Shown: in pieces, positions 9,601 to 12,600 of the stretch
Layout: each line of letters starts with the position of its first letter
Numbering within the stretch: position 1 is the stretch's first letter
Assembly: GCA_951406725.2 (NCBI GenBank)
Contig: OX597824.1
Coordinates: 32,384,001-32,446,000, forward strand
Direction of reading: 5' to 3'
Length of the DNA stretch: 62,000 nt
From: Octopus vulgaris
Lineage: Eukaryota
Notes under the pieces: model-generated
What the model saw: the letters and a program-made list of their open reading frames with translations, nothing else
Database searches by the model: none
What the model was told of the DNA's origin: nothing
Program-made: the position numbers and the translations under genes

Positions 9601-12600
9601 CATATTATTGTGAACATGGTTGATGTAATAACTAAAGAATATTGTGAACATGAATTATGTAATGACTAAAGAATATTGTGAACATTGATATAGTTACTCT
9701 TTAAAGACTATTGTGAACATGTATTATGTAGTGGCTATCAAAAGAACTATTGAAATGGTATTCAATGAAGAATTTCATTTCTCTTTATAAATAAAAATAA
9801 TTTTAGAAGAATTTAAAATTTATGATGGAATTCTGTTCTTAAAATAGTAAATAATTAGTAAGAACTGCAGCAGCATGAATGAATATTGGTGCAAGTGATG
9901 TTGTAAATATTCAACTGGCTAACAACACAAATATAAACATACATGAGTTATATGTACAATAAACAAGCCAAATGAGATTGGATTCAGAAACACTTTACTA
10001 AGGAAAAAAAAAAGAAGAAGAAAATAGAAAGTGATTCCTTCAAATAGAATACACTAGCTTTAACGTTTCCAATGTTTCAATGACAAGTCATTCAAGTACA
10101 CAGTGGTTTATTCAATTCACAACAAAAACATAGAAATGTGTAGTAATAAAACGTTATCAATGGTGGAACTTGAAGCAACTAAAGCTATGAATAATAGTAT
10201 GAAAATATTTGGCTGGAAACCTTTTGGAGCGGAAAAAGTGAAGGCTTTATCTATTTTGATTTCTATCATTAAACGTGATTAATTTTATATCTCTTGACGG
10301 CTATAACTTCATCTGGCATAAGTAACATAGTTTACTGTTTGTCTTCCCTTCGAAAAAAAAATTGATAAAACACACTCTTACAGAGGGTGTTTTATAAATT
10401 AGATGAATTTGTAATAAATCTGAAAATGGGAAAAGAAAATAGGAAACAAAACTGAAGATGACTATCATTTTGAAAAAGAAATTATGTTATACTTATAAGA
10501 CTTTTGTGAATCCAATCCCTATTGCTGTTAGATACATATATACATACATACATATATATATATATATATATATATATATATATATATATCACATGATCAC
10601 ATGACCGACCAGACCATCAGACGTTGTTGTTACACATCGCTGGTCACAATGCGTTTGCATTGTTTTAGCCTTCGAATGACGCCACCCTGCTGGCTAAGCA
10701 AGCAGGCCAACAGAAGAAAGAGTGGTAGAAAGTGTGGTGAAAGAGTACAGCAGGGATCACCACCCCCTGCCGGAGCCTCGTGGAGCTTTTAAGTGCTTTC
10801 ACTCAATAAACACTCACAATGCCCGGTCTGGGAATTGAAACCGCTATCCTACGACCGCGAGTCCGCTGCCCTAACCACTGGGCCATTGCGCCTCCACACA
10901 CACACACACACACACAAATATATATATATATATATATATATATATATATATATATATATATATATGTATATATGTATATATATATGTATATATGTATATA
11001 TATATGTATATATATATATATATGTATATATATATATATATATATATATATATATATATATATATATATATATATATATATATATATATATATATATATA
11101 TATATATATATATATATATATATATATATATATATATATATATATACACATACACACACACAATGTGTATGTGTGCCTGCATCTATCAAAACCTGAAATA
11201 TTCATATTTATAAATTATGTTATGTATTCATATTGTTTATATATATAAAAATACACATGACATATTAGATGTATATCATATGCATATATATATTTCATAT
11301 ATATATATATATATATATATATATATATATATATATATATATATATACATGTGCGTAATATGCTCTTTTGAACTGTAGCCATGCTGGAACACTGCCTTAA
11401 GGGATTTATTTTATCTCTTTGAGCCCAGTACATATATTAAGACTGGTACACTGTTTGGTGAACTGCTAAGTTCAAGTAGTACAAACAAACCCACTCTGAT
11501 TTTTAAGCAATGAGATATATATACATATACAAAGATGCAAACATACAAATACACACATATGTATGCATACACATATATACGACAAACTTCCATTCAGTTT
11601 GCTGCTACCAAAGGCAATAACAAGGCATTGGTCAACCCAGAGCTCTAGTAGAATACATATTGCTCAAGGTGCTGGGCACTTTGATTGTACCCAAGACTAT
11701 ACAACAATGCTGTGCATCTCCACCCCCTCTCTCTCTCTCTCTATATATATATATATATACACACACATACGTACATGCACATACATATGCGTATGAATAT
11801 GCATATTTATATGTATACATTTATGTATATATAAATATATATAGCAATAATAAATCTCTGAACGAGATGTAAACAGTAACCACTCAACAACGTAAAGTAT
11901 ACTAGCCATCTCAATATGGCTAACCACTAAGGGTGGGTGTTACTGTAGCTTTTAGCCCCAGGAGATCATCGTCTCTAGCTGGCTTTAGGCACACTTTCTG
12001 TGCCCTTATGGTATTTGCAAAGGGAGGTCATCCCTCTCTCGTAAACCTAAGTGAGAGGGATGACTCCTTTGCAAATACCATAAGGGCACAGAAAGTGTGC
12101 CTAAAGCCAGCTGGAGACGATGATCTCCTGGGGCTAAAAACTACAGTAACACCCACCCTTAGTGGTTAGCCATATTGAGATGGCTAGTATACTTTACATT
12201 AAATATATTTATATATATATATAAATATATATACACATACATACATGTATATATATAAATAAATATATATATATATATAATATGTATATATTATATATAT
12301 GTATATATATATGTGTATATATATATATGTATATATATATTTAATATATATATATATATATATATATTATATATATATATATATATATATATATATATAT
12401 ATATATATAATACATATATGTGTGTTTGTGTGTGATTGTTTACTTACTGACTAACTGATCATAATGGATTCCCACCTTTCAGAGTTGAAGAATTATCAGC
12501 TTTTGGTTTTAGAGTCTGACGAGCCGTCCATTAAGTTCTTTAAGGATGTGAAACCATTAGTCACTCTATGACTGGATATATACTTAACTGCACACTCACA

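Follow-up and report, generated by a model that had tools for sequence, protein, structure and literature searches.

A decayed hammerhead ribozyme motif in an octopus ryanodine receptor intron and its probable origin in the 3' end of a Penelope-like retrotransposon

The window analysed in this work, a stretch of 62,000 nucleotides from Octopus vulgaris (GenBank assembly GCA_951406725.2, contig OX597824.1, positions 32,384,001 to 32,446,000 of the forward strand, here renumbered from 1), carries exon pieces of a ryanodine receptor (RyR) gene on its minus strand and, between them on the plus strand, a hammerhead ribozyme motif that a first-pass annotation had pointed out. We hold it very probable that the segment containing this motif, 12436-12604 (+), is the dead, solo, 5'-truncated 3' end of an autonomous Penelope-like element (PLE) of the Hydra type, lying antisense in a RyR intron at a (TA)n microsatellite. 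In the sequence of events that we propose, a PLE copy would have inserted at the (TA)n microsatellite inside the intron, antisense to the gene, and the hammerhead would be the motif that the family carries in its 3' untranslated region (3' UTR) or pseudo-long terminal repeat (pseudo-LTR). In the active element, to judge from the literature on PLE hammerheads, the motif would be present twice in tandem or read-through transcripts; since helix III with its loop (ACCAUUGGU) is short and near-palindromic, the two could pair through an extended intermolecular helix III, and the resulting dimer would cut the multimeric RNA to unit length, a mechanism that has been proposed for PLE hammerheads.

The hammerhead motif and its repeat family

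The plus strand over 12510-12568 reads TAGAGT-CTGACGA-[27 nt]-GAAA-CC-ATTA-G-TC-ACTCTA, and this is confirmed as a type I hammerhead motif in which the invariant core positions are all intact: there is a CUGANGA core, a G12-A13-A14, an A15.1-U16.1 pair and an H at position 17, with three helices around the core and helix I open. The stems, the core, the GAAA and the GTC triplet, together with C17 at 12562, all read as the first-pass annotation had given them. The 5' strand of helix I occupies 12505-12515 (+) and its 3' strand 12563-12573 (+): six inner pairs join TAGAGT (12510-12515) to ACTCTA (12563-12568), and beyond a T12509/T12569 mismatch four outer pairs extend the helix (12505-12508 with 12570-12573). 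The core boxes C3-U4-G5-A6-C7-G8-A9 (CTGACGA, 12516-12522, +) and G12-A13-A14 (12550-12552, +) were read directly. Helix III is the hairpin ACCATTAGT at 12553-12561 (+), with two pairs, A12553-T12561 (A15.1-U16.1) and C12554-G12560, around the loop CATTA; it is followed by C17 (12562, +), 3' of which cleavage is predicted from the hammerhead numbering and the GUC triplet. Helix II (12523-12549, +) is imperfect and weak. A G10.1.U11.1 wobble closes its base, the G10.1-C11.1 pair being absent from the window copy on account of T12549; above it come a bulged C12524, a segment of five pairs that includes a G.U, a bulged A12530, and a tip of four pairs made entirely of A and U (TTAA/TTAA) with the loop GTTCT. 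The folding energy of this helix is -5.7 kcal/mol, as against -12.7 and -16.0 kcal/mol in L010 and L008, two better-kept copies of the same subfamily.

In principle the motif could have arisen by chance, as a hammerhead look-alike without any descent from a ribozyme, and some figures, if taken by themselves, lean that way. The hammerhead fold has an energy of -5.0 kcal/mol, 8.7 kcal/mol above the minimum free energy of -13.7 kcal/mol, and in a shuffle comparison of the whole stretch the folding was no better than that of the shuffles (z = -1.16). A loose descriptor of the motif found 0.47 matches per simulated 62-kb window; when helix I was set to at least 6 bp a match was present in 14 of 400 simulated windows, and with the strict descriptor, in which helix II also had to be at least as stable as the observed one, in only 2 of 400. 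For a single window the motif is out of the ordinary, though not for a genome of 2.8 Gb, and alone it is not decisive. We count it as real because of its repeat-family context, not because of the motif alone: it is common to a repeat family whose consensus is the better hammerhead, and several related families of elements, as well as foreign elements, have homologous motifs at the same position. A chance match is refuted by this family evidence, and the probability that we leave to it is negligible.

The Rfam models, which had been proposed as a check, contribute little in either direction. No hammerhead was reported in the window at the gathering score, nor at any score up to E = 10, and the hammerhead models returned nothing at E <= 1 for the best-kept copies of the family or for foreign elements with textbook boxes. 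Since these positive controls were also missed, the missing match says little about this class of hammerhead, and the suggestion in the first-pass annotation that a lack of Rfam hits would speak against the motif proved uninformative. RF00163 (Hammerhead_1) does detect other hammerheads in the same genome, with eight above the cut-off among the 73 that were scored out of 263,122 first-look candidates. These loci (for example C5:6546758-6546804 and C7:15930010-15930117 in the genome, G000) include motifs of 42-48 nt and a class of about 105 nt.

When 12436-12590 was used as query of the octopus' own 2.8-Gb genome, at least 46 scored matches were obtained among 537 first-look candidates, with an identity of 74-84% for those of nearly full length and of up to 90% over shorter ones. 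The family is a dispersed repeat, and the view of the first-pass annotation that the segment is the remnant of a mobile element is borne out. The consensus, the column counts and the end positions given below come from 30 aligned copies retrieved with the window query. In the nhmmer profile of this family, which has 988 positions, the window segment 12436-12604 (envelope 1501-1669 of L001) covers positions 658-831; in the long copy found in L031 its counterpart is 1178-1341. From the nhmmer match and the repeat family we annotate it as the 5'-truncated 3' tail (part of the 3' UTR or pseudo-LTR) of an old PLE, with the hammerhead inside.

The 30-copy consensus, ...TTCGGCTTTAGAGT-CTGACGA-GTCGTCCATGGGGCTAAGCCCTTTATGGATGC-GAAA-CCATTGG-TC-ACTCTATGACCGGAC..., describes a fuller hammerhead than that of the window, as had been anticipated: it has the G10.1-C11.1 pair, a near-palindromic helix III of three pairs (ACCATTGGT) and five extra bases in helix II. 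In comparison the window copy has T for C at position 11.1, lacks the five bases (GGGGC) from the distal part of helix II, between 12531 and 12532, and has A at 12559, where 26 of the 30 copies have G, with the loss of one helix III pair. With G10.1-C11.1, one pair of helix III and part of helix II lost, and with no second motif beside it, this copy is probably a very poor ribozyme or an inactive one.

CpG decay can be recognized in the column counts at 12504/05, 12520/21, 12525/26, 12549/50 and 12573/74. At 12549 and 12550 the 30 copies have C13/T16 and G20/A9, respectively, and the ancestral dinucleotide was therefore CG. The earlier proposal that the G-U pairs of stem II are decayed G-C pairs holds for G10.1.U11.1 but fails for G12526.T12547, which is ancestral (T in 29 of 30 copies). 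The core has decayed as well, G8 having become A in 11 copies and G12 in 9, and N7, a CpG site, being T in 7; the whole motif is kept in 5 of the 30 copies, about one in six, as neutral decay would leave. Measured against the consensus, the window copy has a Kimura two-parameter distance of 0.13 and the family a mean of 0.14, which for an octopus host would correspond to roughly 40 million years by the calibration used in PMC13282606.

In the alignment of the family (A1) 90% of the cells are paired in the hammerhead structure, as opposed to 30-46% in slid controls. Covariation within the family was not above that of shuffles (86 of 500); this is expected for dead copies, and we have not used it for or against function. 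On the strength of the alignment, the ancestor is taken to have had the hammerhead fold and its copies to have drifted neutrally since. The exact pattern AGTCTGAYGAGN{22,32}YGAAACCATTGGTYACT has 49 matches in the genome and 0 in the reversed control. These 49 intact motifs form subfamilies distinguished chiefly by the distal part of helix II; one pair of helix II is U-A, U.G or C-G depending on the subfamily.

Coding sequence of the parent element

In nine of the 30 copies the element goes on upstream for more than 640 bp and enters the degraded coding sequence of an endonuclease, and in the longest ones reverse transcriptase (RT) sequence lies further upstream. Three long copies have about 1.45 kb in common and two of them go about 265 bp further; in these the hammerhead is found some 200 bp downstream of degraded pieces of an open reading frame (ORF), whose order is first the RT motifs GLCRDDAL and LDVTL, then a CxCX5C linker (CSCSVYNDC), and then the motifs of a GIY-YIG endonuclease (YIG..F..H..SF and CKLC..E).

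A protein search with the RT fragment of this old family revealed, among 13,439 first-look candidates, a much younger relative with 48% identity over a 201-amino-acid fragment, which has open frames of up to about 717-720 amino acids in tandem or inverted copies about 2.6 kb apart. At L060, a locus of this better-kept relative, tandem units of 2.59-2.63 kb contain an ORF of 708 amino acids with the motifs RWK (MRWKAFFF), DKT (SDKTKNLY), CSCRNKELC (again CxCX5C), YVG, CGLC and CPH; the stretch from the GIY to the YIG motif is free of cysteines. The Hydra clade of PLEs has been described (Craig et al. 2021, PMC8557442) as having units of less than 3 kb with a single ORF whose C-terminal GIY-YIG endonuclease lacks CCHH; its markers are a CxCX5C linker, RWK, DKT, and CxxC and CxH around conserved E and N. 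Canonical hammerheads are readily found in this clade, which inserts into (TA)n and has been reported from Mollusca (PMC8557442). Judging from these motifs, the parent of the window copy is most likely an autonomous PLE with a C-terminal GIY-YIG endonuclease, belonging to the Hydra clade.

A number of points weigh against this assignment. It was made by agreement of motifs with a published description, and not by phylogeny or by means of a reference sequence. Pfam matched no family to the 708-amino-acid protein or to the ORF fragments, and about 1,000 homologues (some 700 amino acids long, on contigs of 2.3-3.7 kb) are not named in any source. RWK and DKT were seen only in the younger relative, whose 48% identity refers to the RT fragment, and the N-terminal half of the protein is missing from all the copies of the old family that we have seen. 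The copy counts, furthermore, are lower bounds.

Copy ends, insertion site and host intron

Directly upstream of the element there is a (TA)n microsatellite at 12300-12419, its likely insertion target, from which it is separated by a short (TG)n-like junction (12420-12435, read directly). A (CA)n run at 12591-12608 marks the 3' end of the element and overlaps the position where many copies end. The window copy shares the adjoining (TA)n with four others (L004, L007, L008 and L018). Placed on the profile of the long copies, the 5' ends of the 30 copies fall at model positions 492-747, apart from the nine that run onward into coding sequence; at the other side nine copies have their 3' ends clustered at model positions 816-842 (831 for the window copy), and others continue further. 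Incomplete copying during target-primed reverse transcription produces this picture of a shared 3' end and ragged 5' ends. This distribution also contradicts the suggestion in the first-pass annotation of a non-autonomous element of about 150 bp bounded by microsatellites. When the 62-kb window was searched for other parts of the element, none came up; the remaining matches belong to an unrelated nested repeat.

The window copy could instead derive from a short non-autonomous hammerhead element, either a non-LTR retrozyme or a SINE-like (short interspersed nuclear element) derivative of a PLE tail, which would have been transcribed, self-cleaved, circularised and moved in trans by PLE proteins. 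The fragment is indeed short, with microsatellites at both of its bounds, and animal retrozymes have been argued to derive from PLE pseudo-LTRs (bioRxiv 10.64898/2026.07.22.740005). The distribution of 5' ends also contains one feature that counts against simple truncation: six of the 30 copies start within about 20 nt of each other, at model positions 640-658 (the window copy at 658), and three of these six abut (TA)n. The remaining 5' ends, however, are spread over the wide range given above or run into coding sequence, and no tandem hammerhead-flanked monomers were found among the 49 intact motifs, all of which are at separate loci without a neighbour. Where two copies do lie near each other they are inverted, as in PLEs, and not tandem. 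For these reasons the retrozyme family suggested by the first-pass annotation finds no support here, and we consider it unlikely that the window copy belonged to a short element of this kind. The more specific idea that there is a discrete, short, non-coding form of the PLE tail, of about 170-250 bp, starting near model position 650 by (TA)n and mobilised in trans, of which the window copy would be one unit and which would represent a retrozyme-like cephalopod derivative of a Hydra-clade PLE, appears quite unlikely.

Short tandem repeats of the tail do occur at one locus, L010 (G000:C1:51328987-51332099), and could be cited in favour of a short element. At about 1300-1745 this locus is palindromic, with about three 76-bp tandem repeats per arm. 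The 76-bp unit, however, begins inside helix II, ends at ...ACTTAACTGCATT and does not contain the CUGANGA box; such repeats may be traces of template jumping at the element's 3' end.

The location of the element with respect to the host gene follows from two ORFs on the minus strand. The one at 434-805 holds an exon that matches RyR2 residues about 3800-3850 (E = 1e-19; RIH_assoc), and the one at 25846-26115 an exon that matches RyR residues about 3650-3730 (best E = 3.5e-9). With RyR exon pieces on both sides the element lies in intronic sequence, on the strand opposite to the gene, in agreement with the placement originally given to it. The hammerhead, being antisense to RyR, is represented in the pre-mRNA only by its complement and therefore cannot cut the RyR pre-mRNA.

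Another reading is that the host has co-opted the window copy, for instance in the form of an antisense transcript that cleaves itself and thereby modulates RyR expression, in the manner of the few conserved intronic hammerheads of amniotes. The boxes of the window copy are intact even though G8 and G12 have decayed in many of its relatives, and this, with the intronic location, is what could be said for such a role. Its strand is opposite to that of the gene, its divergence is like that of its relatives, the pairs that would stabilise it are lost, and the share of copies that keep the whole motif is at the level of neutral decay. Host co-option is, in our estimate, highly improbable. The window copy, read as a truncated PLE tail, would rather be neutral debris whose catalytic boxes were kept by luck, and since it is antisense, solo and decayed it has little consequence for RyR.

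Very long microsatellites of the (TA)n/(TG)n type fill much of the intron-rich window (for example at 5650-6760, 14500-15300 and 46640-47430) and offer many targets for elements that seek (TA)n. Other repeats are also present. A repeat of about 190 bp at 10709-10897 (-), probably an abundant SINE, is also nested in the PLE copies L046 and L061 at 85-88% identity, and ORF pieces with the same retroelement-like protein tail lie on opposite strands at 27250-27468 (+) and 45326-45655 (-).

Hammerheads of related elements and of known systems

The closest sister family, L061, has 65% identity over the RT fragment. Its layout consists of an inverted fragment, a hammerhead, an ORF with RT and endonuclease, and a second hammerhead, with (TG)n on the flanks, and shows the classic architecture of PLEs with pseudo-LTRs; inverted pairs are common. 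Hammerheads are also carried by three foreign elements (L072-L074) of the same protein family, found in ENA assemblies. In L072 the hammerhead lies about 45-85 nt past the stop codon, inside a repeat that also precedes the next ORF, and for the other two the only hammerhead observed stands upstream of the ORF. All three have a U opposite a U at 10.1/11.1, the base of a short, GC-rich helix II, and resemble in this the axolotl HHR_Amex2 (PMC7229834).

Across these lineages the CUGANGA, GAAA and UH boxes are constant, and the stems differ in sequence yet remain paired: helix I is UAGAGU/ACUCUA, UGGGGU/AUCCCA, UAAUAA/UUAUUA or UUCGU/ACGAA, and helix III is ACCAUUGGU, ACCCAUGGU, ACUCUGAGU or ACUCGAGU. 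The genome holds several Hydra-clade lineages whose hammerhead stems differ while the core does not.

The young and very abundant relative represented by L060 (G000:C13:21758500-21768000) has a stretch homologous to the hammerhead, for example at 3380-3450 on the minus strand of that locus, which reads AGAUAA-CCGAAGA-G...CAUC-U-GAAAC-UCAGAG-UU-UUAUCU, where U4 is replaced by C and G12 is preceded by an additional U. The 19-mer GATAACYGAWGAGATGGTG of this relative has 4,718 exact matches in the genome; among the first 100 matches listed nearly all have CCGAAGA, and the few copies with CTGAAGA look like products of CpG decay. From these sequences, it seems that a prolific young PLE lineage carries a non-canonical hammerhead core; that it is the most prolific of the young lineages makes this relevant to the question whether an active hammerhead is required by PLEs at all.

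These results can be compared with the systems in which such motifs have been described. Hammerheads in PLE tails are already known, and the window copy adds one more in an ordinary setting; hammerheads spotted in cephalopod introns are most simply read as PLE tails, of a class that the Rfam models do not see. RF00163 itself has the same core boxes and the same order of helices, and the difference is that the window's family falls below its detection. With the metazoan non-LTR retrozymes (Cervera and de la Pena 2020, PMC7229834) the family has in common a type I hammerhead in a mobile repeat of low GC content, and there is a possible evolutionary link between retrozymes and PLE tails. Retrozymes are tandemly repeated, non-coding sequences about 170-400 nt in length that are expressed as circular RNAs (PMC7229834), whereas the copies of the window's family are scattered through the genome, stand alone or in inverted pairs, and are joined to coding sequence.

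The likeness to the hammerheads of PLE pseudo-LTRs (Cervera and de la Pena 2014, PMC4209133) is much closer. These too are of type I and have the sense orientation within the element's terminal repeat or 3' UTR; their helix II is long and has an unpaired base at the 5' end, the shortness of their helix III suggests that they act as dimers, and they are mostly solo motifs from truncated PLEs, with pairs on opposite strands (100-700 bp apart in the published set). A single motif gave no detectable cleavage in that study, and dimers cleaved weakly (PMC4209133). The window's family differs in that its helix III, though small, is real (3 bp closed by a loop of 3 nt) and its helix I consists of 6 bp plus an extension, features that are absent from the strict 'minimal' variants; its helix II, moreover, is unusually long (32 nt) and has an internal loop. 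With the Hydra clade (PMC8557442), lastly, the agreement extends to the unit of less than 3 kb, the single ORF with RT and GIY-YIG endonuclease, the linker, the motifs (RWK and DKT in the younger relative), the hammerheads and the insertion into (TA)n; the differences are that the window's family is old and known from degraded 3' parts, and that its younger relative has the non-canonical core CCGAAGA.

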